From assembly GCA_963924565.1 (NCBI GenBank), contig OZ004612.1, positions 29,078,001 through 29,142,000 on the forward strand: a stretch of 64,000 bases of DNA, read 5' to 3'. Under the pieces are notes generated by a model that did no database searches, had not been told where the DNA came from, and was given only the letters and a program-made list of their open reading frames with translations. The translations under genes and the position numbers were made by a program. This stretch comes from Ascidiella aspersa (lineage: Eukaryota). Position 1 is the first letter of the stretch, and each line of letters begins with the position of its first letter. Below, piece by piece: positions 1 through 47,175 of the stretch.

Positions 1-120
1 ATGGGTTGTAGCTCCCACCGAAAAGTAACACAATACCAGGATTAATTACACAAACAAGACATGGATTAATAGTTTGCGGTAAAACAACCCTGCCCTTTAT
101 TTTTCGAGTCTACATCGTAC

Positions 121-3100
121 CTGTTGTACAAATCCAAGTGAGTCAAGTGGTCGTTTTCCGTTGGAGCTTCCCAATTGTTGTCTGTTGTATTTGAAAACGA
201 ATATTTATAAACTTGGTTGTTGGTTTTTAGTCGATAAATCCAAACTCGTTGAATATCTAAAGTTGTAAACATTGGTTGTTAGCCGGTGGGTAAACCCTCC
301 AAAAAGGTAACAATATCGGAGTTGATATCTGTTAACGCTAAATGGCATATACATGGGTGTCTAAAGTTTTATAATTTTTGAGTTTTAATTAACCGGAAAT
401 ACTAGGCCAGGGGTGTCCAACAAGCGGCACGCACAAATGTGGCACGCGACCTAATAAAAAATGGCACGCAAGCCCTCCCCAAAGATACTAAAATTGTTAT
501 TTAGCCAATTGTCAGAAAATACTAAGTTTGTTATACAGCCAATTTGTTTGTTCACAATATACCATTGTTTGACAATCGCGTCAATCACGACAACCAACAA
601 TTACTTTTGATATAGTAACATTATACTGTTTGGAGGCTAGCATTCACATATTTATATAGCTTGGTGTGAAGAAACAAAAGTCAGCTCATCGAGAGACACT
701 TTGATGTAGTGATGCGCATTTCTACTAGACAGTTTTTTTTTTCAAGTTTAAATAAACGTTCTTATTTTTGGTAAAATAAGCGCTTTTATGATTAAAAAGA
801 ATTGGTTCGGTTACGAAACTTTGGCACGGGAAGAAGTTGTAAGATAAAAATTGGCACGCCGGCATGTTTGAGTTGGACACCCCTGTACTAGGCCATTGTA
901 GTGCTGTTCATTTATTAATTGTCAGGGTTGTAAATATACAAGTGTTGTTTAAAAGGGAGAAGTATAGATCTATTAGTTTCATCTTCAGCGGAACGACATT
1001 AAAACGAAAATACCTTCAGTATATTGTTCGGAAAGTATTGGATAGACTTCTTTGTTTAGCGAAGTTTCGTTGAACGACGCAAGGGCGCCACCCAGTGACG
1101 AACAGTTGCTACTTGATTCTGTTGGGTCAGCAATTTCGTCAGACAATGATAACACTGAGTCACCCTGGCTTGTAAGGGTTGGACTACAATCTAGAAAAGT
1201 CGAAGATTAACGACTAGAGATCATTATTTTTGCGTAAGCGTTTCACATTTATATTATTGGTTTCTCGAATGTTTTCAAACCCTTCGCTTTAGCGCCTAAA
1301 GTAAGAAAGACAAACATTATAGCAAAGAAACAAACTCGTTTGTGCTTTACGTTTAATGAAAGACACACACACACATGTGTTTAATAACAACTGTGATCTA
1401 GCCAATGTGAAGCTGCTTGTACTAACAGAATGTGCATGTATTGGCGCATGGTTGTTTCTCGACTCGCTCCTCTCTGAGCCTGCATATCTCAGTTGGTAGA
1501 GCGACGGTCCCGTTATGGCCGGAGGTCGTGAGTTCGAACCTCACTGCATGCTAGTTGTTTTTCTGGCCTGCTCTGCTTGCATCATAGATCGACAGATTCG
1601 GCGAGTCTGCGATGGCTTTTCGGTGTACTATTGATACGGAAGCCGTAATCGTTGGTCATAAAGCAACTTTACGTTTACTTTGAAAGCGCATCAAATCGGA
1701 GTGGGACAGTCGGTTAATTTAACTTCGGTCGGACTTTTGACTTGCATAAGGACCACGTAAAACTACTAGAGTCCCGAGTCCGACGTGTGCATGCGCAGTA
1801 CAAATTTACAAGGTCACAACTTGTAAATTATAAAGGTGGAATAGAATATGTGGTTGAATATTTTTAACCACGTATTGTTAATGGATGAATTATACGCCCT
1901 TATAAGTGGGTGGCTTAATATCCACCCTATTTTAGTTACATAAATGGGTGAAATACAGGTTGTAGAGTCTGGGCCGGACTCATGACTTGATGAAATCGCA
2001 CATTTAGCTGGAGTGAGTCAGACTCGGGTTCAGGCTTCATTAATTTGTCCGGAGTCGGATTTTTTTAACCAACTCCGCAAACCTACGGACTTAACTTTCT
2101 TTGGACGAAGTCGTATATTATGTTGTTTTAAACCGACTTCATATTTCTTACCTGGCTGTACATTAAGGTTTGGTGCAATACATGTTCCAGCAACTGATCT
2201 TGTTAGAGTTGTTCCTTCACAGTTTGACGCACAAATCTACGTTAGCGATAAAATTTCGGTCGATATCGTTTTTTTAGCAATTTATAAAAGCTATATAAAC
2301 TCAACTAACAGCTGTTTAATAGTTGTTCTGTCTCAAACCAAATTTAAATACAAAAAACATTTTTTGACCAGAAATGCGCAAATTTCTATTTTTACTTTTT
2401 AAGAAACGTATTTTGCGATGTAGATTCTTGGCAAAGTCTTAGATTTCCTAATATTGTGGCTTTAAATAAACTCTATATACAAGTCATTAACCAGTATATG
2501 TTGTCGATCGTACTTCTCGTAGATCGTACTTCTCTTGTAGGTATACATATTATAACTATAAACATGATTAACGCCAGTGTTTACATATTTTTTTACACAC
2601 TTTTTAGATATTCTAATTCACATACGGTAAAACTTAGCTTTCCACTCCCAGTATAGTCGCTTAATTGTATTGGTATCATACAAATGTCCTGACTGCAATA
2701 TTCTCCATCGCTGGTGTGAGTAAAATTGTCCAGTCTCCCAGTGTCATTATGCACACTTATCTAAAAAAAAACAGAAAGCGCTTTATATATTGGTAATGCT
2801 TAGCCGGAAAGTATGTCCTTTCTGCAAATAATCTGTGTTTATATTATAGTATATAGGTTTTATAATTTAAGTTTTACTTGTTTAGCTGCGCAAACTTTTT
2901 TCGGCGATAATTAATTAAGGTAATGCCATGACGTTAAACAATAGACTAATATCGCTCTGGCAAAACTATAAAGTTAAAAAGCTAATTTTTCAAACCATGT
3001 TTAAACTTTATTCACCTAAATAGAAAGGATCTTTTATAAATAGAACTATTTATTTTGCCATTATTTCCTATTGGTGACAAAATAATATTGTAACCGCGTT

Positions 3101-6100
3101 AAAATGGAGTTAATATTTACAATTTCATTTTGGGTTTAGGTTTTGGAAATGAATTGTAAATTTATTATTTAACAAATCTCTGACAGTTTAGTTTTATAAA
3201 AATACACAAAATAAACCTTACGTCTAGGTCAAATTCTCCCATGGGTAGAGGATTGGCGGCTGTAACATTGCATTGACCACTTGATTTGATGACGTGTGCG
3301 TTGATGACGTCATTAGGTTGTCCCGGTGCGATCACGATTTTCTTATAGTACGTTATTTCTGGCAGATCCGTGCATCCGATATCCGCCCGTACCTGAAATA
3401 ACACAGGCTTAGTTAGAGCTGGTCGGGAACAACCATAGCACCATTGCTTGCTGCATCGTGTTTGTAAAGCTAGCCTGTAGTGAGTTTCGAACTCAAGACC
3501 TAGGCCATACCGGGACCATCGCTTTACAGCCTGAGCTACGCAAGCTCAGTGAAATCATGGTTGTGTAAAGATAAAATACTTACAGAAACCTCGTATTCTC
3601 CCAACCGTGTCAGGTCATGCACTGATATATAATCTCCGTTGATAACTTTGAATGTTTCAGTGTGGCTTGCATTTCGTAGTTCTATGACAACCTAAGAAGT
3701 ATATGACTGTAAATTTGGTGAATCAAATACCAAATGTATGCGTTAAAACATGTTTTTACCGTGAGATTCCGTGCGTAATAAGCTGTTAATCTCAGCAGAT
3801 TCCAACTGACAACAAGTGTGGTGGAGTTGCATTCGTTTGAGGTTTCAAAGTTGGCTGAAAGAATCAGTGATTGTATTCAGTTAAATGTAATTCGTTTATG
3901 TAAACTGCAGTTATTAGTGTTTAATAGAATGTGTTAGACTTGATACTTTGGCATTTACTCGCGCTTGTGCCTGTACTTTGTGTATTTTACTTGCTTTTAT
4001 TTCTAGTTTGAACTGATAAAGCACGGTTGTGTAAAAGTTGTACTTACACGCACAATTGATTTTAATAGCCATACAGAAGTATATAGCATTTTGAACATAT
4101 TAAAGCCTATACAGAAGTATGTAACATTTTTAAAGTACCAAATGATTTCCAGACTTAGTATTTATTACTAACCGTCAATCTGACACGAGTAGAAGGCCTG
4201 GCTTTGGTTACAATTCTTATTCAGTTCTTTTTCTTCGTAAATGTCCCAGACCTTTTGCTGGCAGACGGTGTAATTCACGTCTGTAAACTCTGTAGCGATT
4301 TCACCATCGCTCCATTTCCATTGGGTTGTATTGACGTCAAATCGAGCCCCGATAAAAACCTCGCTCACTAAACAAACGTTGTTTGGATATATTTTAAAAT
4401 AACAATAGAAAATTTACACCAACGGTAGATTTTAAACAGTTGTTTTTTATTTCTAATATCTACATCGCAACCTATTTTTTTTTTGAAGCAAAGTTCTACG
4501 ATTTAACATAAAAATAAAGACAAATGTTACAAGTTTGAATAAATTAGGTTCTATATATGTTACTGCTGAAAGATTCTGATTGGAACTTAACGGTTATATT
4601 GTCGGTCAAATGTACATCATTCGCAGTTAGAAAGGAAGCTTGGCGGTAAATTCTGTTATAATAGTATCTACAAATACTGGATAAATTGAGGATTTTATTA
4701 AAATCGCATGTTAGACCTTTCTGACTGCCACTAGGTATTTATAACATATACCATATCTAAAATTAAACCGTAAACACTTCGATATTTAAAGAATCTTTCA
4801 CATAGTAAAAATATTATAGAAATATTCATGCATCAAATCACAAATATTAAACCAAAATTGTTCATTTTATATAGGGAAATAAATATTTTGTCCATCTTAG
4901 AAAATAATGTCACTTACACCTAATTTTTATTAAGGAAACCCATAAACACTTAATCTACAAACATTAGCTAGATACTAACCTGGTGCGTAAAAGTCTCCCC
5001 TGAAATTTGTTGAAGTTCTGTATGTTTCATTGACGTCAGTTAACCTGTCGGAGTATCCAGGCCCGCCAAAAGTCAATATTTGTTTAAATCCTCTCGTCTC
5101 GTAAGCAGTTGCATACAAAGTAAAGGTGTTATTCCAACCTATACGATAAACCATACACGTTAAAGTTATGGCATTGCTAACTGTTGCACAATCATTACAT
5201 GTTTCGTCGAAATGGCATTATAAGTTCTGATAATTACTAGACGTGAATTTTTGAAAACTATATTTGCTGCTATAAAGTCTTTTTCGAATAACTCTTTTGA
5301 GTATGCTAATGTAAAACCTTCACAATTCTACCTACTTCTGCATGTGCTTGTGTGTACTACAACCTACAGTCATTATGTCACTCTTAAGACTTTTAAATAT
5401 TAAACAACTTGACCGCCTTGTTCAATTGTAAATATTTTGCATAGTGAACAAAGTGTATGACAAATCAAAACCTTTCCCCAATAAATTATGTAAGTGGATA
5501 GTTAAACCTAATTTATTTCCACGACAAAGTATTTGTTTTTCGTCCAAATGATATTATTGTATCCAGGTAATGAGTAGAGTATTATCCAAAATAACTTATT
5601 AGACATTAAAGCATAACTGACATCATGAATTTTAGCAACAGAAAACAATTTTATTTCATATCTTATTTTTTTTTTGTTTTATATCTTCAATTTTATTCAT
5701 ATCGCGTTATAAATTTGTGTTGAATAAGTGTGTCGAATAATGGTTATATACTGCAGTGCTCTTCAACCGGTGTGCTCGGTGTACCATAGGTTGCACCAAA
5801 ATATGCATGGGGTGCACCAGTACGGAAAGGTATCCAGGGATGTATCACAAACTTTTAATGACCATTTATAATTAAAAAAAAACCGTCATTAAATAGTCGT
5901 TTTGCTATTTTCCCAAGTTTGTTTGAATGCTCTTTGATGTAGTACTCGCCAGCAGCCTGTAGCCATAATCGAACTCTCACCGACAGTGTGTAAAACTTCG
6001 GCAGCTCCGCTCGGTTTAATTGACATAATGATATTGATATGCATAATGATTTTTTAGATCGCTTTTTACCTCAGTTTACCTTTTAAGTAAACACGGTGCA

Positions 6101-9026
6101 TGGGTTCGTCACAACAACTTTAAGGGTTCACCAAACTGAAAAAGGTTGAAGAGAACTGGTATACTGCATATACTTTACCAGGAGAACAACTGCCCGCGTA
6201 TGTTGTTGGGATCAACATTCATTTGTGTTGAAAAGCTAAGTGTCCAATAGTTATGTACTGTATACTTTACCAGGAGAACATGTGCCCCCGCCCAATTCCA
6301 AACTCCACTTTTCTGACGGACTGACGACAGCTTTGCAAAATATAAGGGCAGTTGAATCAACTATCGACGTGGAACTAAAAATATTATGAATTAGTGAACA
6401 AAACATATTTTAAAGTTGACATAGACAACATAACCCAATATATATATTAGGGTTGTTCAAAAAAACACTTTTTTGTCAAACATCAGTGATGACCCCCTGG
6501 AATTGTTAGGTTGCGTCTAAAAACCCCACAACTATGCACTTTTGGTTCAGTATTAACCGTGCTACATCAAGTTAAAAATTTAGATTTAGGCTAAAATTTT
6601 GAAAAAAATAATTTATCCTCCCCCAGAAAATTTTTAATTTTTTTTTTTTTTTAATTTATCCTCCCCCAGAAAATTTTGAAAAAAATATTTTATCCTCCCC
6701 CAGAAAAATTTTTTTTCAAATTTATCCGCATTGCTTTGCAATTGAATAGCTATAAATAAATCTGTTTTACAGTTTAAAAGTGAGTACTGAGTAGTCATTG
6801 TATAAATGTTTCACTTAAAATGTGACACAAAAGTGTTTTTTTGAACAACCCTAATATATATATATTAAACAAGTGAACAAACCAATGACAAATTAAAACA
6901 CCTATCGAGTAATAGTAAGTTGAAATGCATCTACCTATTCGGCAATTTTCCTGCAAATAAATGATCTGTAATAGACATTAAACACTCAAGCTGTTTTGTT
7001 TTTTAACATTCTAGCCAGATTTAATTGCGTAATTTACTTCGTAATCATACTGTAAGGTATTTTGAGTCTAGGCCTGAGATTTGTTTTTTTCAAAATTCAA
7101 AGCAACAAGTCCGATTTTCTATGGTTTATTTTTAAGGACGCCCTGTTATGACGTAATTCGTGACGTCATGTCTGAAAAGTGTTATGCCTAAAAAAAAAAA
7201 AAAAAACGTCGTTTCGGTAAAAATGTGTCCTTCTTTCACCCCTGATTTTTATCCCTACTGGTATTTTTTTGATAACTAATTTTTCTCTCGTTTTCCGAAT
7301 TGCTGCAAATTTTCAACCATTCTACGGAAAGGTAGGTTTAATAACTGCTCCACAAATCTACTTACGAGTTGTAAACGTTGAGGTACCACATTTGATCGAG
7401 ATGCTCGGGACTGGTCCAATGTAAAGGTTCAACGTTTGGCGTCAGCGAATACTTGTACAGATCCGATGGGTTGCCATCCAACTCTGGGTGCCTTGAATCG
7501 TAGAAGATCCAAAGACGCTGTGTGTCTTTCACTGCCAGTAAAAGTAAATCTAAATTGTGCTGTCCGCAATGAAGTGAATGTATGTGGTGTTCAAGTCGTT
7601 TTAGGGTTTATTTGTAGAAAATGCAGTAACCACATTCCTAACATCAGTAATTTTGCCTTTAGTTATCCCATGAGCTATCTACCTTCGTCCCTCATTAAAC
7701 AAAAGATGTTGCCGCGTTGTAACGTATTTAGCTTGCATTAAATGCTATTCCACCTGTAGTTTATCCGCTTTTGTTGCTTTTCATTGACCAAACGGAATAA
7801 CTAGTATTCAAGTGAAAAGTTAAGGTTATGTAATGAGGCATAAACGTGGGATGTACTACATCAAAAGCGATTGCAGACTCACCGAATCTGCCGATCAATG
7901 ATGCAAGCAAGGCGGACTAAACAACTAGCATGTAGTGAGGTTCGAACTCACGAGCTCCGGTCATGCTAGGACTTCTGAGCTACGCAGGTTCAGAGAGGAG
8001 CGAGTCGAGAAACAACCAAGACGCCATTGTTCTTGCTGTTTTATTGTTGTTGTTGCTTGCGTTGTGTACTAATGGTTATTTTCGTGATGAAAAGTTAATA
8101 TTCGGTGAATGTTACAACAATGGTTATTTCCTTTTACCTTACCAATTTACTATATTTCCGTTGTGTAATAAAGATTAGAGGTAAAATTCAATTGTTAATA
8201 GATGATGCGTGTGTATATAGTCTTTATTTTTACCTGCTGTGTATTTTAAAGCTGCTGCATCAGCCACTGTTTGGCTTGCTTGAGTTTCTCTGGTGATGGC
8301 CAAGCTTCCTCCTTGCTGTTTACAGCTTTCCTGTGCTTTATCGGCTACGCTGAGGTAATCCGACAACGTGAACACACTCTGGCCCACCAGAGATAAAGCA
8401 GGTACGCAATCTGTATGAAATATTATAAAAAAAATTAACAGCTGGTAGTTGGATTGGGATAATACTTTAAATAGCGTGTGCCGGTTGGTTTTATATATAT
8501 TTTCGCAAATGATAAGAAAAAAACAATAAGGGACTTAACTTTACAGGAAGTTTTTAAGTAAAAAAATGCGTTATGCATTTGTGAACAATGTAATTATTAT
8601 TTTGTCTAACATGAATTTTTCAGCTCTTTTAAAATCTCTTTTTTTATTATTCGTATAGACACGACATAAATGTGAAAGCCACGTGCAATTTATAAAAAAA
8701 TAAAAGTTTAATACAGCAAGTATAGATACGTTCATTCGCTTATATGGATATTTGAAAATTAAGAGGCTATATCGTCTACAGATTAAATTGTTGAACTAAC
8801 AGCAGATTTTTTTGAGCAATTTAATTATAGCAGAACGGCGCCTCAAAGGTTAAACAAATGTATTTGACACACAATCACTATATTACAACTTATATTAAAT
8901 TGGTCTTAACTAAGGTTAAACATGTAAGCATTTATTGCCAGAATACAAATATTATCACTAACCTGATGAATAAACGGGCTTCCAAAAAACAAAAATCAAC
9001 ACAAAGCAAGCAATATAAGTTTGCAT
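121..9026 (-). CDS. Receptor 3 (partial, continues beyond window start): signal peptide + split CTLD with ABC insert + 2 FN3-like domains + start of a second supermodule
   Basis: Phase-consistent GT-AG exons: 8963-9026 (MQTYIACFVLIFVFWKPVYSS, signal peptide), 8234-8410 (CTLD N-half, AQESCKQQGGSLAITRE), 7366-7531 (A), 6271-6374 (B), 4980-5138 (C), 4173-4367 (CTLD C-half, VFIGARF..WKWSDG..CQQKVW..C..FYSC), 3760-3854, 3584-3691, 3222-3392, 2626-2760, 2152-2236 (FN3-like pair), 1014-1190 (second CTLD N-half), 121-256 (second A exon). Exon phases match and sizes closely match receptor 2. Confidence 0.85.
408..885. mobile_element. Non-autonomous hAT element (MITE)
   Basis: 14-bp TIR caggggtgtccaac / gttggacacccctg; perfect 8-bp TSD tactaggc (400-407, 886-893); subterminal tggcacgc repeats. 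Confidence 0.9.
1376..1670 (+). mobile_element. tRNA-containing interspersed repeat (tRNA-like core 1478-1551 with conserved flanks)
   Basis: A-box-like ctcagttggtagagc and B-box gttcgaacc; 5' leader ggttgtttctcgact and 3' body (gcatcatagatcgacagattc...aagccgtaatcgttggtca) shared with other copies. Confidence 0.8.
3425..3550 (-). mobile_element. tRNA-like repeat copy
   Basis: ttcgaactcaagacc...gagctacgcaagctcag, preceded by a leader remnant aacaaccatagcacc. Confidence 0.7.
5754..6158. mobile_element. Non-autonomous hAT element (MITE)
   Basis: TIR cagtgctcttcaacc / ggttgaagagaactg; 8-bp TSD atatactg / gtatactg (7/8). Confidence 0.8.
6447..6854. mobile_element. TIR-bounded MITE inserted in (TA)n, with internal tandem repeat
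   Basis: TIR ttagggttgttcaaaaaaacactttt / aaaagtgtttttttgaacaaccctaa flanked by tatata on both sides; three internal copies of tttatcctcccccagaaa (~6612-6706). Confidence 0.85.
7866..8020 (-). mobile_element. tRNA-like repeat copy (internally deleted)
   Basis: gcagactcaccgaatctgccgatcaatgatgcaagc body, ggttcgaactcacga, and leader gagtcgagaaacaacca. Confidence 0.7.
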
Positions 9027-28800: not shown

Positions 28801-30170
28801 GTTCTGAGTCGTAGTATATCCAAATTCTCTGCAAATCTAAGACCAACAAGATTGGTAAAAACGTCATTTTTTTCTAGAACATATATAAAAGGGCGTATCT
28901 TCATAGAATCCAAAACCATTGGCAGAAGGTTTCTGCTTTTCGATCACTGTTTCGCTGACGCGTATATTAACAATAAAACTCAAAGTTGAATACCCCGAGT
29001 TAACCAGGTTCACACATTTCAAAATATGTATATATAAATTTCGCCTATACTGGCATCGTCACTTCCTTACTTCGAATGAATGAATTCCCTTTGAGTTTTA
29101 TTGTTTATTGTCATACAGTTTCACTGTTGATACGCTAGATTCTCTGCGAATCTATAAAGGAACGAAATAGGTACGAAATGTCAGTTTTTAGTAAAACAGT
29201 TTCACTGTTGATAATCTAGCAAACCTGCAAATTTGAGAGCAACAAAATAGGTACCAAATGTCAGTTTTTATTAATACAGTTTCTCTGTAGATACTCTAAA
29301 AAATATAATTTTTTAGCCATACACCTTTTCTGTTGACACTAACCTCCAGAATACTTTGATTTGGCTCCGTCGGTAACGATTTGCTTGACATCTGCTTCTC
29401 TGGTGACAGACAAATATCCACCTAGCTCTTCGCATCTTTCCTCTGCCGTATACGCATCGCTCAACTCATCCGATAAAGTGATCACGCTGTGTCCGTCCGA
29501 TAAGAGATCGGGTTGGCAAACTGTTGAATTAGATTTTCTTACTTTTTTTAAACTGTTTTTGGTGCTACATAGCCTACTATCGGTGCAATGACTTAAGTAC
29601 ACGTTTTTTTCATTTACTTGAATGAAGTCTTAAAGTATAAAATGGCTAGACGTGGACTTAAATCATTTGTCTTGGACCTAAGTTATTACAAAGTACAACA
29701 GCGCTACGCACATTATAAAAGCGAAAGATTTATACAAACGTGATCAACAACTGTGATCTAGCCCTTATTGGAAACGACCTAGATTAAAATCAGATGTTTT
29801 AAATGAATACTATTTTGATAAAGTTGGGTTATTTACTTCATTTTTTGACTCTACTTGTTATTTTTTGCGAATTACTGGACTTGGTCGTAAGTCGTAATAA
29901 GAATAACTAGTTTTCAACAATTTTCTAGCCTTGCATCATAATTAATCGACAGTATCGATTAGTCTGCCATTAATTGTATTCGGTGTCTTAATGATACACA
30001 AGCCTTTATCGTTGGTCACAAAACAGCTTCAGGAGGGATATATCTCAGTTAATAAACTCATATATGTATGTATCTTTCATTTACAACAACGCTACGTACT
30101 TACCTAATCCCATTAAGGGCTGGAAACTATACAACAGAAATAACCAGAAAACAGCACATTTTTTATTCAT
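10890..30170 (-). CDS. Receptor 2: type I membrane protein, 2x[split CTLD + ABC insert + 2 FN3-like] + TM + short tyrosine-motif tail (~977 aa)
   Basis: 24 phase-consistent exons: 30104-30170 (signal peptide MNKKCAVFWLFLLYSFQPLMGL), 29344-29520, 28689-28836, 27723-27820, 26336-26503, 24967-25161, 24389-24486, 23813-23923, 23252-23422, 22791-22919, 20981-21059, 19863-20039, 18949-19084, 18190-18281, 17694-17852, 16972-17100, 16377-16486, 15457-15567, 14749-14919, 12945-13073, 12331-12391, 11732-11834 (TM AVVVGSICGGLAAIGLLVGVCYCCG), 11121-11149, 10890-10975 (TAG stop). Total 2934 nt, open frame; two introns need GC donors. Confidence 0.85.
19696..19819. repeat. Short hairpin element
   Basis: actaaaaagaa...ctccaacgtttcggctacc / ggtagccgaacgttggag...ttctttttagt. 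Confidence 0.65.
20790..20900 (+). mobile_element. tRNA-like repeat copy
   Basis: gctcagttggtagagcgaccgtcctggtatgaccgaggtcgtgagttc. Confidence 0.75.
21472..21636. mobile_element. Palindromic foldback/MITE family (aagaatatcaaagcccatacagaagtagg arms)
   Basis: Near-perfect inverted arms aagaatatcaaagcccatacagaagtaggtatcatttt / aaaatgatacctacttctgtatgggctttgatattctt. Other copies at ~15095-15300, 18420-18605, 30746-30915, 31895-32072, 33300-33372, 40859-41030, 51765-51930, 59825-60020. Confidence 0.85.
25318..25734. mobile_element. Degenerate hAT-like MITE
   Basis: Begins cagcctttcttaacc; flanked by ctctaata / ctcgaata (7/8); right TIR decayed. Confidence 0.45.
26820..27450. repeat. Long imperfect inverted repeat (~150-bp arms), foldback-like
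   Basis: ggataattcttagtttattatctgtttgtaataac...tccgatatttgac (~26856-26960) versus gtcaagtatcgga...gttattacaaacagatagtaaactaataattatcc (~27315-27413). Confidence 0.7.
29116..29300. repeat. ~80-bp tandem repeat (~2.3 copies)
   Basis: acagtttcactgttgata...aaataggtac-aaatgtcagttttta repeated. Confidence 0.7.
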
Positions 30171-35500: not shown

Positions 35501-38500
35501 GCAAAACCTACAGCAAGTTAGAGACGAATTCCCAGGCACCCATTCCGCTCCATAATTCCATTCGTCCAAAATTTTGAATTCTTCTTTCGCGATATGGACT
35601 CTATATAAAATGATTCTCACGTAATAATGTATGGCAAAAAGGGGTGCCTTTTCAAAGGCCTACAGCAACTAGTTATAAGTGCAAGGTTTGAACTAGTCTT
35701 TGGCGAGGTTCGAACTCACGACCACAGCATAACATTTTTTTATTGTATTATTATTATTATTGCTAGTCAGGATATGTTTAAGGTTTTATATCACAGATGT
35801 ATACAAGAACATTACGATTTGTAAGGTAACTAGTTTAGTTCAACACTTAACTGCCGTACATTTGTTCTCTCGTCATTTGCTGCAACTTGTCGGCGTTGTA
35901 ATCTGTGTCGGGTAGGGACAGGTGTTCCAACAGCAATCTTCGAATAAATGAATATTGCTCCTGAAAGAAAACAACATTATACAGCATGACTAAAGTAGTT
36001 TATTAAAGTCGTTGTTATTTTTCTTAAAGCAGGATGTGGTATGATACACAGATTTTCGTAGAAATTTCTATAAAAACTATAAAATCTAACATAGGGATGT
36101 CCCCAACTTTACATTATATATACTAATACATTTAAAAAACAAAAAAAATTGCTTTAGAATAAGAACTTTACATCAGTTGTTACGTGCTTTGATAAATTTA
36201 CTTTTAAAGGTTGCGATGCACCGGTATATTTTTCTTTGCGAACGTTTCGTCAATAATTCTTGCCATCGCAGTGTGAAATAATTTAAAATGAAAACGCAAT
36301 AATCGACAAAACACACGGTAATCGGCAGAGTAAGCTCATTTTACACACCGACGATGACATGAGATGTTGCCGATACGTTTGTAAACACAAATATATGTCG
36401 ATTTTATCGAAACGTCTTGTATTTCATAGATGTTATAGTTTTTATAAACACTGTGTGTATCTTACCCAGTCTTGGACCAACTGAGATTTATGTTGTTTCA
36501 ACTTTACAACCGTATTATTTAAATCCACATTTCCTTTGGTATCTGCCTCATCGAAAGCAGTGTCCATTGCAATGTAAACACCAGTCAGTTCTTTAGAGGC
36601 ACTGAAATTATAAAATAAATTATTTTTGCACGCTAAGAAATTTTATTTTCTGTTGGGGATCCAACTTGAAAAACATTATTTCAAATTTCTAACTTTAAAA
36701 TTGCTTAGCGTTTTCTTTTAGCCTACTTGTCAGACAAACTTTCCTTTAGATTAGAAAGCCGGTAGTATTTTTTCAGAAAAGAGCACTTTCATTAAGATAA
36801 ACGAATATTGATGCTTTGTATGGTAAATATTGTACCTTCGCACCTTTGAAACGGCTCACATTTGTTCATTTCACTCTAATAAGTCACAGTTACCTGCAAT
36901 GAACGGTAATTGGATTCCTTCTGTCGTGACTTTCTTCGACCATTTTTCGCAAGTGAATCAAGCTAGTTGTAGTAACAGGTGTTCCGTGGTCAGGCCAGCC
37001 AATGAAGTGGAACTGAGTGACAGGGCGTTGTTCCTGGTACTAAATATACACACACAAAAAAAGCTTGTCATTTCCCTAACACTGCTTCGTGTCCCAGTGG
37101 CCGAAGGCTTAGTTTAAGAACTCTCTTCTGGTGTAAACGAACTTATAAAGCGACGTTTTGGCAGCAGACACTAGCTAACCACAGGTATATAACTTCGTTT
37201 ACACCAGAAGAGCGATTTCTATCTATTGATACTTTATTCAGGTTTAAGTTTTAATTTTACACAAATTTGAATAACAAGTAATTACTTCGATTGTCCCAAG
37301 TTCAAGCTTCCTTTGGATTATGTTTCCAAACCGCTTTTCCTCTAATGAATTTATCCTGAACCTTCCGTGTGTTGAAGTTGACAATAATTGCGGCCAATAT
37401 CGTACTGGTTTGGTCTGATATAAGATTCAGATTTAAACGTGAATGGCAAATTAAAACGGTTTATTTCAAGGACGGTTACCTTGGCTTGTTTTTCGCTTAT
37501 CATCACAATGGTTGAGCAGTTCTGTTGCCAAATCAATTTCCAGAATTCGTGAATCGTTGTCGATTTGGGATCCCGCGTGGATATGAATTTAGACTCGTTG
37601 TTGTAACCCTATTTTCAATTTAGTATGAATTTAAGCAAACGTTGTTTGTGCAATAAAAAAGAAAGAAAGATTAGAATACTTTGTGTAAAATAACACAAAG
37701 ATTTTGTTAACCTAGCTTACCGGTATGTAAGGAACGTTGTAGTAGTCCCTTCCCGCTCTTGTTCTTGCTTTAAAATTTTTACAAAATTTAATTGACGCTA
37801 CATCATTCATTTTCCAATAGTGTTATTGGTAGTCATTTGTACTTACTTGAATATAAGTTTTTCGATTTGTACCTCGAAGCATTGCGTTTGTTCAACGTTG
37901 CAGTCAGAATGCTATTAATTCCTAGACTTGAACGCAACCCCTATAAAAATGTATTTTACTTAGGAAAAACAAAACAAGAGTCTTGATAATTTACCACTCA
38001 GTGGCGCACAGTCAATGTAGTGCACAAAAAATATAATGTATTTCTCTGATGTTTTGGTTTGGCCGATCGGTAAAACACACTACTCTATTTTTAAAAGCGT
38101 GGCAGTGTTTTCAAAGAGTAATTTAAACCTTGCAATTGGATATTGACTTCCATATTCTAGTTCGATCCTCGTAATTGTTCTTAAACGGAAAAAAGGGACT
38201 TTTTAATATTCTACATAGCCACCGCCGGAAACCAACTTACATTGAACTGGTCTTGGCAGTCTTTAAAGTTGTTTTGTGAGCTCAGCAGATAGTTGTTGTA
38301 TAAGTCAGATTTTAATCTGAGTCTTTTAGCCTTGGGATCATTTTCGTCGAAACTAGTATCTGTAACATCAACTAAAAGAATTGTTAAATAAAAAGTCGCA
38401 TTATAGTTGGTAACTCTTTGCAAACACTTTCTTACCATCTGGAAAGCTCCACTTGCGCTCGGAGTCCACCTCTCCACCTCTGTACGTTTAAAATGAAAAA

Positions 38501-41500
38501 AGGTTATAAAAAAGCTACATAGCTTAGTCAGTTTATGGTTAATGTAGCTCGAAATTACTGAATAAGGTTGTTTTATAACGTTGGAACATAATTGACCTTA
38601 GCGAACATGCTGTTTGGGATAAAAATTGGCGCTATGGCAGTATAAATGAATTTTACGAAATCGGAATTAATCCTGCACGATTTTGAAAGTGCTCAATCAG
38701 CACTCGTGTCTAATATTATTATCTATGGTTCAGTCACAATACCTTACCTTTTACAATAGCAGCAGCAAGCAACGCACAAAGCAATAATAAGCAAGATCGT
38801 TATGATGAGCAGAATTAGTGTGATACTGGCCATTCCTAAATAGAAGAAAAGTTTGATATATTTGCTATGGTTTATTTTAGCTGCACACGAAAAGTTACTT
38901 TTTGCTGATTTGCAAAATCCATCCACTGCCACCCATTCATTTGGACCTTCGCATGTTGTAGCTCTAATCTGTGTTAAAATTATTATGTGTTGTGTTTTTG
39001 TAAACGTGTTACAATTATAGCAAGTTTACCTGCGCAGTTATGCGAGTTTTATTTCCGTGTCCTTGAAGAGAAATGTTCATTCGATGTTCCGCGTTAGGTT
39101 CTGTTCTTGTCAAATCGTATTCTTGGAACGTTGTGTTTGATGAACTGATGACTTTAACCTGAAATGTCATCCCTGTTGTTGAGATTTTCGTTGGTTTAAC
39201 TTTTAACGGTTTTCTAAAGACCGGGAAAATTATTTTTACGAGAAATTGATATCGATTTAAAAAACAATGTTTAATCCTTTTTGTTTATTTTGCAATGTGC
39301 TCGTATCTATTGGTTCCTAAAGCATTTACATTTTAGTGACTTGTCGCTTAAATCATAGGCGTAGCCAAGGGGGGCTGAGGGGCCATGGCCCCCCCAAAAT
39401 TTATAAATATTTTACTCTTAATAATTTGTTTTTTTAGCATTTTTGAGCAGTACCACAACATTTGATCACAGGCATGCCACACTTTCAATTCTCATGTACT
39501 GTTACGTCACAAACGATGTAGTTAATATAACATTTACTATACATTAATGTAGTTTTACTACTTTCAGACAGTTTTTGCTCTTGGACTATTTTTTTAGTAT
39601 TGCGTTAACACTAATTCAGTTGCTGCTCGAAACGGTTTGCTAGCATTGTGATGTGTGTTCGTTGCGGCAGTTAATACAATGGTAAAAGCTAAACGAAAAA
39701 TTCCAACTTTTTGGCCCCCCAAAATTTTCGGCTGGCTACGCCACTGGCTTAAATGCACCCTACGTTGAAACAAAGTGTGCCTGAAAGTACAGAAAGGTTT
39801 GAGGAATACAAATAAAAGTTGATTTGTTTAAATAACGTTGTTTGACCCTGGCATTGTTTCATGTTTTAACTTTTTTTAATAATTACCTCTGCCACATTTT
39901 AAAGCTTAACAATGCACAATTGTTGCAATTAATTTCCCAAAAAACACACAAAATTTCTCCGTTGTCGGTATCACCAAGAAAAAGTACTTTCATTTAACTT
40001 ACTGTGTAGCTGAGAATATTTCCGCTCTCATCTGACGGCATAACGACTGTGCAAACCTTTACGGTTGATTCTATCCTGGCTTTTGTAACGGGTTCGGCCA
40101 AACCGTAGCTTGTGTTAGCTGATAAGGTTGAATGCACAGACCCGCTGAAGCAACGACCAAATAATGCAGCCACCTTTAAACAATACACACTGTAAACACG
40201 AGTTTATTTGATATGGAATTTGCTACTTTAGATTAGGTTTGCAACCGTAATATCCTTGCATCAATATAGTGCTGTATATCCTCGAAAAAACGTTTATCGG
40301 GTGGGCAATAAAGAATTAATCTGCCTTGTATTTCGAGGCTACCATTTTCAAATGGTTACACTTTTGTTGGTAATTGGCTTGATAGATAGCATTAGTAAAT
40401 AAATCTTGTGGACTCTATAGATAAATGGGGCCTAATTGTTGCATGGTTTGCTATTTATTAACTCGCAATTGTTATGTATGGAATTACTTCTGCTTGGCAT
40501 TATATATTATTAGAAAACGTGCTTTAATTCGCAGTAGATAGAAACATGGAGATTAAGAGTCTTACCTTAAAGGTGTATTTTGTACGTTTTGTTAGATTCC
40601 CAATGGTCGTAGTGAGATCTTTATAGTCAACACGTTTGTCGGTGATGTTTTTACCGCTTATTACCACCTGCTTAATACATTGCGTTGATAATATAAAATG
40701 ATAATTCATGCTCAGCTAAAACATCGCGAAAAATCAAAACAAATTATATGTTAAACACAATATCCAGTACCTCTTAACTAGGCCGCAGCGAATTTTAAAA
40801 TATAGAAATTTTCGGTGAATTACCGTGATATTTACCGCATTTTAAAAACATTCGTTGATGTAGTAAGAATATCAAAAATAAAGCAGAAGAAAGAAGCATT
40901 TTGAAATTTTTCAATATTTCTTTATTCATTTCAAAAAAATAATATTTAAAACGTTCACAAAATGCTACCTACTTCTGTATGGGCTTTGATATTCATTCCA
41001 CGTTTAACTACAACCTCCAGCCATTATCCTTTAAAAACATGCTGATGTTATTAAAATAATAAGTATAAAAGTGGACGTTACCGTTATATTCGAGCAGTTA
41101 TATTTGTCTTGTAACTTCAGCAAGTTGTCTTTCCAACTGACTTTAAGTTGTGTGGAATTGCAAGTAACCGGCTCCAATTTTGGTTCAACTGCATATCAGA
41201 TGAAACATTAACGTGCAATAGTTCGTTGTAAAAGCTTTGTTTTAATTCATTGACAACGAAACGCCTTCATGCTCCTTACGTATTGCCTTGAATTGTATTA
41301 AAAACGATTGAAAAGTTATGAATATATTGTTTTGTAAAAAGTGTGCGACTAGTTTTTAAGTTTATTAGAGTGTGAGAAGCAAAAAAAGAAGTTTTAGATC
41401 ACTGCCCTATATTCTAATTAAGCTGACCTTTACAGGCAATTGAATATTTCTTTAATTTAAAGATGTTCATAAAACCGTGAGTAAAAATGTAGTAATTTGG

Positions 41501-44500
41501 AACATTTCTTTAAATTTTTCGTCATTACTAATGTTTGAATACTATTGCCAATGTTTGTTAAATTGATCAGAAATTTGTATCATTGTCATACTTACACTTT
41601 ACTAGGCAAGAGTAGTAAGTGTCACTATCTTTACAAGCCTTGTTAAGAATTTGATTACTATCAAAGTCCCAAACTTTCTGCTGGCAAGTTGTGTGACCAA
41701 CATCTGTGAACTCTGTAGCATTTTCACCATCGCTCCATTTCCATTGTTGGTTTGACTCATTGAATCGAGCCCCGATGAAAACTTTAGAGTGTAAATCTAC
41801 ATAATAATGAAGTCTATCAAAAACGTGAGGCTAAGGTCAGTTTCATGACACACATGGAGCACATGGCCATAAAGTCCCCAAAATATTTTTTGCTTGTTTT
41901 AACTACAAAAATTAGAAAATTTAACTCTGCGCAGGATCTGATTTATCTTTCTAGCATGTTTTTATTATACCACTTTAATACAATCGTTTTAGCTCAAAGG
42001 CATCTTACGTCGTTTTACACGCCCCCAAAGAAAAGTGTGATAACTTAAAATGCATAAAGCGCGAATCGAAAACATCTTCTCATAAAGCTGTTGAATTAAA
42101 AGCAACACCTCTCCAACCTAAAACTTTAACGATATAAACCAGCTGTGTAGGGATCTTATGGTTATTTCTTTATGTTGTCACGTTTCGATAAAACTTTATG
42201 ACATCATATTTGTATGTAACTTTATGACATCATATTTGTATGTAACTTTATGACATCATATTTGTATGTAACTTTATGACGCGTCGTTGTTGTGACTTTG
42301 TAATGTCCAGGTGTGAAGTACCTTTATGACCTTATCCCTGAAAAAAAATTACTGCCAAACAACAAATTCTAAATGCGCTCCTAGAATTTGGCTATGAGAT
42401 GTTAAAGTAATATGCTAATGATTTGTTTGGTATTTTTAACTTTTTTATATTGTATATATTGCACCAGATATGTTGCTATCGCACAAAGCGTAGAATCTCC
42501 CCTTTTCGTTCATGAAGTCTAGATAGCTGTCGTCTTTTACATCTGTAAGTCTCATTGACCATGGCTCCCCAGAATTGTCGTATGAGTAGATCTCCTTGGA
42601 ACCCGGCTCATGCGTACTTTGCCCGTATAAAAGGAACATTTCATTCCAATCTTAAAGCGAATAAAGAATATTTTTTAAGCGAAGGGTAAAATTTCTTGCT
42701 GTATCGATTGTTTGGAGTTTTTAGAAGCTGGTGATGTTTTATAGTAGTGAAATACATCTGATCAAGTTGACTATACGGGCGTTAATGTTTCAAAATTGGT
42801 CAGATCCTTATAGTATTCAATTAAACAAAAAGTTGCAACTAAAAATAAGAGTTAAATGTTTCTCTAACTTACAGTCTCATTATAACAAAGCCTTATAAAA
42901 CGATATTATTGTGTTGTGTAGAGTAACTTAGCTTCAATATGTTCATCATGGGTATATTCAATTTTGGTCAATATACCCTCAAGGGTTCAGACTTAGCTCT
43001 AAGAAGTCAGAACAATTCTTTAATTTGTATATACTCGGGTTTAGCCTTATCTGATTGGGCATAGCAATTTTCTTTATAGTGATTTGTTTACCTCGATGGC
43101 AGGTTCTATCCACCGAAACCAACCACTTTTCCACTTCGCTTTTTGACTCACAAAACCGTATGGGGATTGTTGACGGCGAATTGTCGCTTCTGTGACGAAA
43201 CAGTAACAGTCATTTAAATTCCCCCGTATATGATAAGGTCAACGCGGAGAGGTTTTCAAAATGTGCTTCGCGACGCCATTGTGCGTCGTTTCAATTTTCA
43301 AGTGCCACACACATTAATTATAATGTATCGTATCTTAACTCCATTGTGGTAACAAAATGTTCACAGAATTTATTACCTACTGACGTGAACAATATTGGTA
43401 CTCTAGATCCCCTTTAATATAAAGTTGCTTGTACTAGCATAATGTAACAAGCACTTACATATAGTTGTTTCTCGACTTGTTCCTGTCTGAGCCTGCATAG
43501 CTCAGTCGGTAGAGCGACGGTTCCGGTTAGGCCGGAGGTCGTGAGTTCAAACCCCATCCTAGCCTATATTTAATTTTCTAGCCTGCATTATTAAACGATA
43601 TATTTGGTAAGCCTGTGATAGCTTTCTGTGTACTACTAACATATGCATACGAGTTTATTGTTACTATAAATACTACAGTCCAACTTGCTGTAATTACTAG
43701 AGTTCAACAAAATTTAAAGGGAAGTAGGTTAATACAAAGTACTCACGAGTTGTAAAGATCAATGTACCACAAATGTCCGAGATGTTGGGGACTAACCCAA
43801 GGTGAAGACTCGTTTGAAAATAACGAATATTTGTAAATACTCGTTTTGCTCTTGTTGTAATAGATCCAAACTCGTGTAATATCTTAAGTGACAAAAGGTA
43901 TTTATGAGTTCTAAGCAACAATATATCTTAGCATCTTCTGATCGGCGTTAACGTTATTGGACTTTGACATATTGTTAAATCTTAAATAAGTTTTTTCAAT
44001 TTATATCGTTAAAATATAGCAGAAACCCTAACCAAACGTTACATTATTTAGGGTACGAAACGTCAGTACATGTAAAAGGTAAAAGTGCGTAAGAATGCTG
44101 CCTTTTATTCAGTATATTCATCATACAGTGTTTCAAGCGTTGCTACCTGGTACGTAGAAGGTTTCCCGCAGTTCGACGAAACCTTGGTAAAAATCGTCTT
44201 TCACATTGGTGAGTCTCATCAAAGTTGAATTATCTTCGTGACTGTAGGAGTAGATTGCTTGGTAGCCCGGCAACTGTTTGCTGCTTCCGTATAACTTAAA
44301 TTCTTCCGTCCAATCTACGATAAAAAGCCACACAATTTTGAATAACTGGCTGTATTATTGTTATTACCGTAGCTCGATCGATAGAGCGACGGTTGCGGTA
44401 TGCCCCGAGGTCTAGAGAAGTGGTTCTCAACCGCGGCTCCGAGAGTATTTTAGCGGCTCCCATTAGGGTGAAAGCAATAAAATGAGGTTAAAAAAATAAA

Positions 44501-47175
44501 TATAGGGTTCAAAAAATTATCAGAAGCATATTTGCACACGAGTTTGCTCGACAACAGCAGGTATTTTTAGATTAATTGTCTGATTTCGTAAATTTATGAC
44601 GTCATACCTGAAAATTGTTATGCCCCCTAAACAAAAACACTGGATCCACCCCTGCGCATAACATACCGCGATGCAAAAGCAACTTTCTAAGGAATCTTTT
44701 TTTTTAGAAAGAAAATAGGACGTTTCAGAGTAAATTGAAAGAGAAACATTTGCCGTTTCTTCGATGTCTTTTGTTGTTATTATTTTTAATAAAATGCTTA
44801 AAGTTTTGGCGGCTCTGTTTTAAAATCGAGTATTCAAATTTGGCTCCGATGCTGACAAAGGTTGAGAATCACTGGTCTAGAATGTGAAGTCTGAATCGAG
44901 CCAAAAAAGTGAACTCGAGTCTGAGTCAAATAAAAAAATTAACCCGATTTTATCTCTGACCAAGTTCGCCTATTACGTCGAGTCCGACTCCGACTCAAAA
45001 CTATAAAAGGTTAATGTCCACCAATCCACTCATAGGAGTGTCATATAATTCAGTTCTTCGCAATAAGTGGTTGGCAATTATTTTGCAATATGCTATTCAA
45101 TTCCTGCAATTTACTTTTTTCTGCCTTCGCAATTTGCTACTGCGCAGGCGCACGTCTGACTCGGGACTCCGATAGTCTTACGGAGTCTCACTCGACTCCA
45201 AAATCCAACTGCGCAGTCTTGGTCCCAACTGCTTCTTATTAACTGGACAAATATATATATATATATTTCCAACATCTTTCACTGGTCTACTTACGGGATT
45301 GACAGGGTTCGGTAATCACCACCCAACTTCTTGTAGTTTTGTCGGAGCAGAAATACAATGATATTGGCGAGTCTGGTACCAACGAACTGCACACAAAAAT
45401 ATAGCTGTTTTAGGGCCTGCTACATCCAAAATGTTTTGTTGCACCGGTGCAGGGGTCCCTGAACTACGGCCTTACGGTTAAATTTTTCGGGCCCGCGACA
45501 TATTTTCCTAATGGTTCTGAAATACAGGCATCAAAACTTTGTTAGTCAAACAGTTTGTCGGATGTCCAACTACTAGGCTAAGTGTTGACGAAATTCAAAG
45601 CTAAGCAAAGCTTCCAAAACCTTTGTAAAAAATAAATATTGTTCAATAGTGAAAGCGGTAGGAGTTGCTTTATCTTTGAACGCTCAATTACGATAAATAG
45701 TAATAGCCTTTTCTTTATTAATAACGTTTTAACGTTCATTCAAAGCAATAATATTAACTACTAGGCTAAATGTTGACGAAATTTAATGCTAAGCAAAGCT
45801 TCCCAAACCTTTGTGAAAAATAAATATTGTTCTATTATGTTTTTAATTTTGGTTATCCGGACCTTTATGACCGTTGTGCAATCGAATTTTACACTCTTAT
45901 TTGTGAGTTAGGCTTATTTATTGGGTTGTAGTTGATTCACACTTAAACTTGCATAATTATTCTAACCCACGCTCCCTATTCAGTCACGTAGGTTTTTTTG
46001 AAGCAAATCAGTAATAAATATTTTGCCGCCCTTTGTTTTATTTTTTTAGTATATGCCGCAAGCTGAAAAATGCACTGGACGCCCATTATAAACATTAATT
46101 GTTATATTGCAATTTAAAAGTTATACAGAAGTTTCTTTAAATATTTTCATCAGCGTAACCTCTTTAGTCATATGTGTTATATTCATTATAACTTACGTGT
46201 CATTATACAGATTAAAGTACCACATATCACCGAGATCTTCGACACTTTTCCATGTCTTACTATCAGTGGTTGGATGTAGAGAATACTTGTAGATCTTCGT
46301 TGTTTGGTTTTCGTAGAATATCCAAATACGAACCGTTCCTAGAACAGGTTCAAAGATTGCTGGTTAAGCCAATTTATTGTTTACAAGGTGTTTTTTTCTC
46401 GCAAGTTATGTTAAAATATTGATTTAGTTCCTAATCGTCGGGTAATGAAACTCCAATAGGGTATTATGACAACTTGGAAGGAGTAATAGTGAAAGCGGTA
46501 GGAGTTGCTTTATCTTTGAACGCTCAATATCGATAAGTAGTAATAGCCTTTCCGTTATTAATAACGTTTTAACGTTCATTCAAAGCAATATTAGGTTTTT
46601 ATTAAGTTGTTTTTGTAGTTTGTTTTTTCTTATGTAGTATGTTCTTTTCTATGATCACAGGTCACTGTTTTATTGTTTTTTAAAAAGTTGTAGCATTCTT
46701 TTAAAAGAGGTAAAAGAAATAGTTTAGGAATACGGAATATTCAAATGACTCTCTTCAGTCTTTTTAAATTAGAATTTTAGAAAAATTTTAATTTCTTAAA
46801 GTAAATTTGTTTTGCATTTTTTCAACCAAATATTTTAATTTTGAAAACAAACTTGACCTGGTGCATATTTTAGGCTTGCTGCTTTCGTAAAATTTTGATT
46901 GACATCTGCTTCTCTGGTGACAACCAAATATCCACCTAGCTCTTCGCATCTTTTCTCTGCCGTATACGCATCGCTCAACTCATCCGATAAAGTGATCACG
47001 CTGTCGCCAACCGACGATAGATCAGGTGCGCAAACTACTAAAAACATTTTGTAAAACCTGGTCGACAGGAATTCGACAAGTGTAATTGTTTAAACGCATT
47101 TGCATACTTACCCACCCCGGAAGTCAGGTAACATCTACTTATCAGCAAAATACTTGTTAGAAATATCTCATTCAT
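32590..47175 (-). CDS. Receptor 1: receptor-type protein tyrosine phosphatase-like protein (split CTLD + 2 ABC inserts + 2 FN3-like + TM + tandem PTP D1/D2, both catalytically degenerate; ~1248 aa)
   Basis: 31 phase-consistent exons: 47112-47175, 46858-47034, 46197-46338, 45295-45386, 44147-44314, 43747-43882, 43092-43189, 42465-42650, 41596-41796, 41082-41188, 40566-40667, 40003-40173, 39030-39158, 38899-38968, 38748-38835 (TM), 38436-38479, 38241-38371, 37847-37940, 37721-37767, 37480-37608, 37286-37414, 36894-37039, 36466-36601, 35860-35960, 35512-35600, 35370-35443, 34877-34993, 34461-34577, 33592-33731, 33076-33211, 32590-32775 (TAA). PTP motifs: DYYNVPYI, EFWKLIWQQNCSTIVM, RYWP, QFHFIGWPDHGTP, PITVHCS, LVQDWEQYSF; D2 NASYI, FIATQCP, EFWKM, VDVFRIVKDLRDMRPNMV. 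Confidence 0.9.
32700..35600 (-). other. PTP domain D2 region of receptor 1 (P-loop VCCKNGCGKTG, no WPD)
   Basis: EEFKIL, NASYIE, HFIATQCP, EEFWKM, GKTGTFIAL, VDVFRIVKDLRDMRPNMVDSPERYIECY. Confidence 0.85.
33783..34075 (+). mobile_element. Two tandem copies of the tRNA-like repeat (best cloverleaf 33834-33907)
   Basis: GCCTGTG...CACAGGC acceptor stem, tagctcagttggtagagc, cggtc-ccggtat-gatcg arm (GGT in loop), gttcgaacc; second copy ~33982-34060. Confidence 0.8.
35860..38371 (-). other. PTP domain D1 region of receptor 1 (WPD loop intact, P-loop HCSASKELTG)
   Basis: Exons 17-24 translate to the recognisable PTP motif series; a phase-2 intron falls inside HCS|A, the position typical of classical PTP genes. 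Confidence 0.85.
39354..39746. mobile_element. Non-autonomous hAT element (MITE)
   Basis: Ends cataggcgtagcc / ggctacgccactg; perfect 8-bp TSD gcttaaat (39346-39353, 39747-39754); ggccccc-caaaat subterminal motifs. Confidence 0.85.
42192..42280. repeat. 26-bp minisatellite (aactttatgacatcatatttgtatgt, ~3.4 copies)
   Basis: Three exact units plus a partial unit. Confidence 0.9.
43460..43640 (+). mobile_element. tRNA-like repeat copy
   Basis: gagcctgcatagctcagtcggtagagcgacggttccggttaggccggaggtcgtgagttcaaacc with leader and body. Confidence 0.75.
44418..44874. mobile_element. hAT MITE inserted into a tRNA-like repeat copy
   Basis: TIR aagtggttctcaacc / ggttgagaatcactg; TSD gtctagag / gtctagaa; gcggctc subterminal repeats; left flank 44369-44417 is the 5' part of the tRNA-like repeat. 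Confidence 0.8.
44890..45215 (-). repeat. Interspersed repeat, inverted counterpart of ~1695-2080
   Basis: actgcgcaggcgcacgtctgactcgggactc (45139-45169) closely matches the reverse complement of gagtcccgagtccgacgtgtgcatgcgcagt (1769-1799); gagtc-rich ends. Confidence 0.6.

Follow-up and report, generated by a model that had tools for sequence, protein, structure and literature searches.

Receptor-type protein tyrosine phosphatases (RPTPs) are usually few, conserved genes with poorly known ligands. Non-catalytic or tail-less forms, such as the IA-2/PTPRN pseudophosphatases, phosphacan (PTPRZ) and TrkB.T1, persist and modulate signalling. A cluster of RPTPs has been described at SudRes1 in the snail Biomphalaria sudanica, where genes with MEGF/galactose-binding-domain ectodomains adjoin phosphatase-less paralogues; the cluster is associated with resistance to a parasite (the schistosome) and its haplotypes differ by whole genes (PMC12297450). 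In Hydractinia, the Alr genes form a tandem family of single-pass receptors with tails that differ between members (PMC9546547). Here we describe a locus of the tunicate Ascidiella aspersa, centred on a window of 64,000 nucleotides (C6:29078001-29142000, contig OZ004612.1; assembly of 308.6 Mb), in which three receptor genes, R1, R2 and R3, are assembled from related lectin-like exons and end in different tails. We lean, with modest confidence, towards an explanation in which all three would be members of a tandem, ascidian-restricted family of receptor-type protein tyrosine phosphatases (PTPs).

The SudRes1 cluster is the nearest described system. Both loci combine ectodomains of carbohydrate-binding type, tandem PTP domains and phosphatase-less neighbours with the same type of ectodomain. 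They differ in that SudRes1 belongs to a mollusc and has EGF repeats with a galactose-binding domain, and in that an association with resistance is shown there and nothing comparable is seen here. RPTP alpha and epsilon (the R4 subtype) are also single-pass and give the best structure match to the tandem PTP region of a Clavelina homologue (see below), but they are single genes with very short glycosylated ectodomains that contain neither lectin nor FN3 domains. By comparison, the second PTP domain (D2) of the window family has Lys for the catalytic Arg, and the first (D1) of R1 is predicted to be dead. Phosphacan and TrkB.T1 differ in being mostly splice variants of one gene, not paralogues, and their ectodomains are unrelated.

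Open frames of at least 35 amino acids (aa) were translated and compared all against all within the window, which is AT-rich (GC 0.30-0.39 per 2-kb bin) and contains no N. Flanks of 240 kb were added and all exon types were charted over 304 kb in total; the region 29.342-29.56 Mb was charted by exon-profile matches only. Gene models were built from splice signals and paralogy. Sets of minus-strand exons recur in the window and delineate three head-to-tail genes made of the same exon types, as the initial annotation had proposed:

47175 to 32590, minus strand: R1, exon order A B D B D C, G x E F, transmembrane, PTP, PTP
30170 to 10890, minus strand: R2, exon order A B D C I x H J, then A B D C2 G x E F, transmembrane, tail
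8735 to beyond the window, minus strand: R3, exon order as in R2

Type A encodes the N-terminal half of the lectin-like domain and measures 177 nt in every copy, five of which lie in the window. The insert exons, B (six copies) and D (five), accompany it, and the C-terminal half is encoded by type C (three copies) or its diverged form C2. Beta-rich exon types (G/I, x, E/H and F/J) come after the lectin exons. A 171-nt exon (14919 to 14749) and a 135-nt exon (2760 to 2626) likewise agree with the sizes first reported. Within the window, only the A exons at 47.0, 29.5 and 8.4 kb have a signal-peptide exon upstream.

Whole-genome exon-profile scans place these genes within a much larger array. 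There are 146 matches to the A exon, 145 of them on C6. The E exon occurs 22 times, always open and always within C6:29.04-29.56 Mb, and the same interval holds 15 D1 exons with the WPD loop (all 102 candidates scored). Seven of the 22 units in this 0.52-Mb tandem subfamily therefore have no phosphatase and 15 have PTP exons. The phosphatase-less units are R2, R3, R4, R5 and three near 29.37, 29.42 and 29.47 Mb, which each have a phosphatase gene after them. The differing tails of the initial observation thus extend to a split that recurs across the array, with phosphatase-bearing, dead-phosphatase and phosphatase-less members next to one another. Rightward of the window lie seven genes with two or three modules each, all with PTP exons. 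Leftward, where the initial annotation had suggested extending the locus, R3 is followed by R4, by the 5'-truncated R5 (window coordinates -24.1 to -26.2 kb, with just its E, F and transmembrane exons) and by R6, which has PTP exons. The ratio of A to D1 exons varies elsewhere on C6, from 7:7 (7.2-7.3 Mb) to 5:1 (8.02-8.08 Mb) and 10:2 (5.0-5.2 Mb).

Some features of the array stand apart from these counts. C6:29.366-29.513 Mb contains three successive repeats, about 47-53 kb apart, of a phosphatase-less gene followed by a phosphatase gene, which looks like segmental duplication of a two-gene module; two of the three have an extra, stop-bearing A exon some 3-4 kb upstream. R6 (window coordinates -29800 to -39940) packs a two-module ectodomain into about 8 kb with introns of tens of bases (44 nt between C and I) and carries the insert cassette three times; its paralogues are much less compact.

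R1 is the phosphatase-bearing gene of the window. Its signal peptide starts at the ATG at 47175 (MNEIFLTSILL...) and its stop follows the open frame 32593-32808. The model predicts one lectin-like module, two FN3-like domains, a transmembrane helix, a juxtamembrane region and two PTP-like domains:

46856..47032, minus strand: lectin N-half (type A, 177 nt)
42484..46333, minus strand: insert cassette, twice (B 46196-46333, D 44145-44312, B 43746-43877, D 42484-42648)
41594..41782, minus strand: lectin C-half (type C; FIGARF...WKWSDG...C...YSC), colinear with residues 198-265 of the Clavelina protein P0021
39018..41195, minus strand: FN3-like exons G, x, E and F, assigned by paralogy
38747..39025, minus strand: pre-transmembrane and transmembrane exon, ending AG/GTAAGG
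36445..37608, minus strand: PTP D1, exons 37354-37608, 36893-37039 and 36445-36642 (Pfam E 9e-11, 7e-11 and 2e-4)
33055..35032, minus strand: PTP D2, exons 34871-35032 and 33055-33243 (Pfam E 3.7e-6 and 2.3e-11)

The tandem PTP-like end first noted for R1 was borne out by five exons above the Pfam cut-off for Y_phosphatase (PF00102), arranged in two colinear sets. Together with the transmembrane exon, these place R1 in the RPTP class; no PTP exon lies between the transmembrane exon of R2 or R3 and the next gene, and these two genes fall outside that class as individual units. A competent D1 has an HCX5R P-loop with the AGxGR glycines and a WPD loop, a combination found in seven neighbours and not in R1. 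The P-loop of R1 D1, read across a splice junction, is HCSASKELTG, in which the catalytic Arg is replaced by Leu; the WPD loop is intact (WPDHGTP) and FISTRDP stands where FIAAQGP is expected. Having kept the Cys and the WPD Asp and lost the P-loop Arg and Gly, D1 is predicted to be a pseudophosphatase. The D2 P-loop is CCKNGCGKTG, with Lys for Arg as in the D2 of all neighbours read. In the seven rightward neighbours, the D1 P-loop is HCSAGVGRTG or HCGAGVGRTG and D2 has NGCDKTG or a near variant (NDCDKTG in M3), always with Lys for Arg. R6 has a degenerate D1, with VQC in place of VHC. The initial annotation's pseudophosphatase members are thus represented by R1, but inactivity of D1 as a family trait is not supported. 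With its single module, degenerate D1 and a transmembrane helix that has no run of GxxxG motifs as seen in the rest of the family, R1 is, as modelled, a derived member.

R2 and R3 are predicted to have two lectin-like modules, each with FN3-like exons, behind a single signal peptide (ATG at 30170 and 8735, respectively):

22782..29518, minus strand: R2 module 1 (A 29342-29518, B 28688-28831, D 26334-26501, C 24965-25153, then I, x, H, J to 22782)
12873..20037, minus strand: R2 module 2 (A 19861-20037, B 18948-19079, D 17692-17850, C2 16970-17077, G 16362-16478, E 14749-14919, F 12873-13082)
11733..11889, minus strand: R2 transmembrane exon (…VVVGSICGGLAAIGLLVGVCYCCG), donor CG/GTAAGT, phase 2
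11121..11149, minus strand: R2 micro-exon of 29 nt (KKKEKDTKE), acceptor TTTTTTGTTGCAG, donor GTAAGT
10890..10975, minus strand: R2 terminal exon, (N)EPVYEVIGNKGAISLELPATTTTVEHF, stop 10890-10892
1..8735, minus strand: R3, part in the window, with signal peptide, module 1 and start of module 2
2626..8408, minus strand: R3 module 1 (A 8232-8408, B 7365-7520, D 4978-5136, C 4171-4359, then I, x, H, J to 2626)
120..1188, minus strand: start of R3 module 2 (A 1012-1188, B 120-251)
-695 to about -5260, minus strand: remainder of R3, left of the window (D, C2, G, E, F, transmembrane exon, 26-nt micro-exon, terminal exon)

The 29-nt micro-exon of R2, which has a strong acceptor and a perfect donor, offsets the phase-2 donor of the transmembrane exon and so brings the terminal exon into frame. 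The resulting tail, R-KKKEKDTKE-N-EPVYEVIGNKGAISLELPATTTTVEHF, has 38 aa and a single Tyr, in EPVYEVI, in line with the short, one-tyrosine tail first described. The tail of R3, which had been placed outside the window, lies 5 kb to its left and reads R-KPSKAVYK-N-ETKLPSPEDNQSENVKASPL; that of R4 has the same layout and no Tyr (R-KTKKVTLK-N-EIEPLLTTTTLTEDSPAQIF). All three tails, of 30-38 aa, are encoded by a micro-exon of 26-29 nt and a terminal exon that meet at N-E. R1 has a 44-nt exon and a juxtamembrane exon at the positions that match this exon pair, and the short tail would therefore represent a truncated juxtamembrane region of single origin. As R2, R3 and R4 have this dedicated two-exon tail in common, the truncation would have arisen once and been kept through later duplications. 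The tail Tyr is not conserved (YEVI in R2, YKN in R3, none in R4), which does not fit the earlier suggestion that these members serve as kinase substrates. Neither tblastn nor blastn found significant relatives of the tail exons.

A DNA sequencing run (X1) differs from the assembly at 10957 and 10966, in both Val codons beside the Tyr of R2. By our hand re-derivation, these differences change Val to Glu twice, converting PVYEVI to PEYEEI. YEEI is the textbook motif for Src-family SH2 domains. The resemblance may be due to chance.

Domains of the ectodomain were assigned exon by exon or on full-length Clavelina proteins. The A-exon profile gave 14 matches in the Protein Data Bank (PDB), apparently all to C-type lectin domains and weak (E 0.014-1.3); the relative P0003 matches Pfam Lectin_C (E 0.0066), the UniRef label of the Clavelina protein P0015 is that of a C-type-lectin-like domain (CTLD) protein, and residues 25-282 of P0015 align to CTLD clusters in the ESM Atlas (TM-score 0.41-0.45). 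Profiles of the C, E and G exons gave no match in the PDB, and single ectodomain exons gave none in Pfam. Pfam fn3 matches neither P0015 nor P0021, but residues 283-480 of P0015, as modelled in the ESM Atlas, can be aligned with tandem FN3 proteins (TM-score 0.58-0.66, feature scores 0.91-0.94); the FN3 call for the R1 exons is made solely through this model of a homologue. We would describe the module, as part of the explanation that we favour by a modest degree, as a C-type-lectin-like domain interrupted by an insert that is rich in beta structure and varies in copy number. DUF7023 was considered for the insert on weak matches and dropped as a whole-genome scan with PF22894 was empty.

The family appears to be confined to one lineage, as had been suggested. 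Among 1.84 billion representative proteins, the profile of the C-half exon finds 31, and the only two of full length come from Clavelina; none of the short database fragments derives from the window locus. Homologue searches with the P0021 ectodomain and with P0015 returned Clavelina proteins only. P0021 (Clavelina lepadiformis LOC143463404, XP_076817985; 1090 aa) is a full receptor in which the same ectodomain is joined by way of a transmembrane helix to a D2 and to a D1 that looks active (HCSAGSGRSG). Its phosphatase region is nearest to RPTP alpha (6uzt, E 8e-110) and then epsilon (2jjd, E 7e-103), which agrees with the proposed derivation from a receptor tyrosine phosphatase. P0015 (LOC143463089, XP_076817574 / CAK8679940; 592 aa, annotated with two predicted isoforms) has the same ectodomain and a transmembrane helix and ends in a 75-aa tail just past ESMYQNT, which aligns with ESVYVNT in the juxtamembrane region of P0021. 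Both genes lie on one 20.8-Mb contig. This pair resembles the Ascidiella genes in having a lectin N-half, an insert, a lectin C-half, two FN3-like domains and a transmembrane helix with GxxxG, and in that one form has the tandem phosphatase and the other ends after a juxtamembrane Tyr motif. It differs in identity (about 28-42% in the best-conserved exon), in having a single lectin module and in a D2 that keeps the Arg. The two proteins are named only "uncharacterized" or "C-type lectin domain-containing", and our literature search found no paper on ascidian lectin-type receptor phosphatases. Taken together, these data make an undescribed, ascidian-restricted and tandemly duplicated RPTP expansion somewhat the better bet. 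Separately, P0015 and the phosphatase-bearing P0040 are identical over the first 25 or so residues of the lectin N-half (about 40-65) and 49% identical overall; the identical stretch may be a gene-conversion tract.

The phosphatase-less copies look maintained. No stop falls within any conserved exon core, all stops in the mapped matches being in intronic flanks. Pairwise ratios of non-synonymous to synonymous substitution (dN/dS) are 0.14-0.52 among R2, R3 and R4, 0.14-0.23 between the D1 exons of R1 and R6, and 0.13-0.73 for ectodomain exons. At exon level the ratio is below 1 in nearly all comparisons and exceeds 1 in two D2a pairs only, at a dS of about 0.05. All six differences listed for DNA run X1 in the A and B exons of R3 are synonymous. 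The window would thus hold the non-canonical members of the family: R1, a predicted pseudophosphatase, and the tail-less R2 and R3, both apparently maintained.

We propose, with the same slight preference as above, that a canonical member would begin with a signal peptide and one to three lectin-like modules and cross the membrane by a helix with tandem GxxxG motifs, followed by a juxtamembrane stretch and tandem PTP domains. The first and the membrane-proximal modules would each be followed by two FN3-like domains, and the middle one of three would be incomplete. D1 would be intact, with HC(S/G)AGVGRTG, and D2 would have Lys for the catalytic Arg. R2, R3 and R4 would be cut off after the juxtamembrane region and end in their common two-exon tail of 30-38 aa. 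The non-catalytic copies may then act as membrane-anchored partners or decoys that tune signalling by their catalytic paralogues. They would do so through a common class of ligand, or through pairing mediated by the ectodomain and the conserved GxxxG helix. A GxxxG-type motif could allow helix-helix pairing. Seven of the eight other phosphatase-bearing genes have retained the G-x3-G-x3-G helix, as have R3, R4 and R5; in R6 there is a single motif of this kind, and in R1 there is none. By analogy only, the targets recognised might plausibly be glycans of microbes, of other individuals or of gametes.

Several observations weigh against this proposal. The models of R1, R2 and R3 are predictions from splice signals and paralogy, and the link between modules 1 and 2 of R2 is taken from the like order of exons in other mapped multi-module genes. 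Lectin and FN3 domains are weakly recognised from sequence; AlphaFold run on P0015 with four sequences gave an unusable model (predicted local distance difference test, pLDDT, 31.7). The EPN/QPD and WND sugar-binding motifs are absent from the three aligned C-half exons of the window, so "lectin-like" does not imply sugar binding. Tail sequences diverge and are poorly conserved, and the tails may carry no signal. The partner or decoy mechanism is itself pure inference. Checking splicing against RNA, as the initial annotation advised, did not support the models in the one run consulted (X3, tissue not specified, about 6% of the run read): no reads fell on the F, transmembrane or micro-exon of R2 or on the signal-peptide, A or B exons of R3, and no junction was seen. 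The reads on 7301-13300 were repeat-derived and partly matching only, and a few minus-sense reads at 10301-10900 had no junction.

This lack of reads would be expected if R1 and the phosphatase-less copies were by-products of unequal crossing-over, silent or decaying and with no function of their own. Such an origin would also account for the 5'-truncated unit at -24.1 to -26.2 kb, the extra stop-bearing A exons at 29.411 and 29.463 Mb, the strong divergence of the tails and the contiguity of the non-canonical units in the left block (R6, R5, R4, R3, R2, R1). We nevertheless consider it unlikely: all exon cores are open, three genes retain splice signals, a micro-exon and an in-frame stop, the dN/dS values and the synonymous variants of R3 described above point to constraint, and the short form annotated in Clavelina comes with two predicted isoforms. 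Far less probable still is a protocadherin-like arrangement, in which phosphatase-less units would be variable 5' parts whose transmembrane exon is spliced past downstream units to the PTP exons of another gene. It is suggested by the donor, since all transmembrane exons, whether or not a phosphatase lies behind them, end in the same phase-2 GTAAG. However, every phosphatase-less unit has its own nearby micro-exon and stop-bearing terminal exon, many good acceptors in downstream units would capture the donor, and each unit has its own signal peptide.

The initial annotation had called the system paired-receptor-like. The KIR, Ly49 and SIRP pairs and Hydractinia Alr are, like this locus, tandem families of single-pass receptors with differing cytoplasmic tails. 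The KIR, Ly49 and SIRP pairs differ in having near-identical ectodomains, tails with immunoreceptor tyrosine-based inhibitory motifs (ITIMs) and charged transmembrane residues that recruit adaptors with the corresponding activation motifs (ITAMs), none of which is seen here. What stands is the tandem clustering of both tail types. A true paired system, in which phosphatase (inhibitory-type) and short-tailed (Tyr-phosphorylated, activating-type) receptors would bind the same polymorphic ligand and send opposed signals, could further draw on the same dimorphism in Clavelina, whose short and long forms have the juxtamembrane ES-x-Y-x-NT motif in common, on Y-x-x-I and Y-x-N in the tails of R2 and R3, and on the three other phosphatase-less genes that each precede a phosphatase gene at 29.37-29.51 Mb. 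Against it, R1, R2 and R3 do not share one ectodomain as first supposed: R1 has one lectin module and R2 and R3 have two, compared exon by exon they are 49-74% identical in A and 52-62% in C (R1 and R2 55% in F), and the phosphatase-less genes rank with those that diverge most. The ectodomain diverges much faster than the PTP exons (about 50% identity for E versus 77-100% for D2c), but dN/dS does not reach 1 in any ectodomain exon. No Asp, Glu, Lys or Arg lies inside the transmembrane helices read, the tails (EPVYEVI, AVYKNE or no Tyr) contain neither ITIM nor ITAM, and that of R4 has no Tyr. "Paired receptor" is an analogy only, failing the defining tests, and we think a true paired system quite improbable.

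A tandem RPTP family with maintained non-canonical members thus remains our preferred explanation. It would mean that one tunicate chromosome carries a very large, fast-diverging RPTP array with a lectin-like ectodomain found in no named protein, and that active, dead and missing phosphatase tails are naturally adjacent within one 0.5-Mb block. If expressed, these genes would offer a natural experiment on the contribution of the phosphatase tail to receptor function, and a candidate recognition family of an invertebrate chordate to set beside the parasite-resistance RPTP cluster of the snail. Should the tail-less copies prove silent, this is an ordinary, though unusually large, lineage-specific gene expansion. 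A bolder view, which we hold to be doubtful, would see in the 146 A-exon matches, nearly all on one chromosome, a system of the chordate lineage that recognises pathogens, allogeneic tissue or gametes. Its catalytic, pseudo-catalytic and tail-less RPTPs, whose lectin-like ectodomains diverge rapidly, would act as sets, a phosphatase-based counterpart of kinase/ITIM paired receptors with the two-gene units at 29.37-29.51 Mb as functional modules.

Other elements were noted in and beside the window. A short interspersed repeat occurs at 7700-8100 and 10100-10330. Both stretches are covered very deeply by DNA run X1 and draw partly matching RNA reads; the 304 kb charted contain about 30-50 copies of the one at 10100-10330. 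At the right edge, a D2-type PTP exon (NGCDNTATFIAL...) runs on the plus strand from window 63970-64000 to 119 nt past the edge and is 74% identical to that of R1; no other family exon was detected upstream of it on the same strand, and this isolated exon is probably a relic. An unrelated gene lies between R1 and the plus-strand receptor block, where the orientation flips:

49000-58200, minus strand: SLC6 sodium:neurotransmitter symporter, with Pfam SNF matches at 57918-58184 (profile positions 1-44) and 50938-51210 (403-474)

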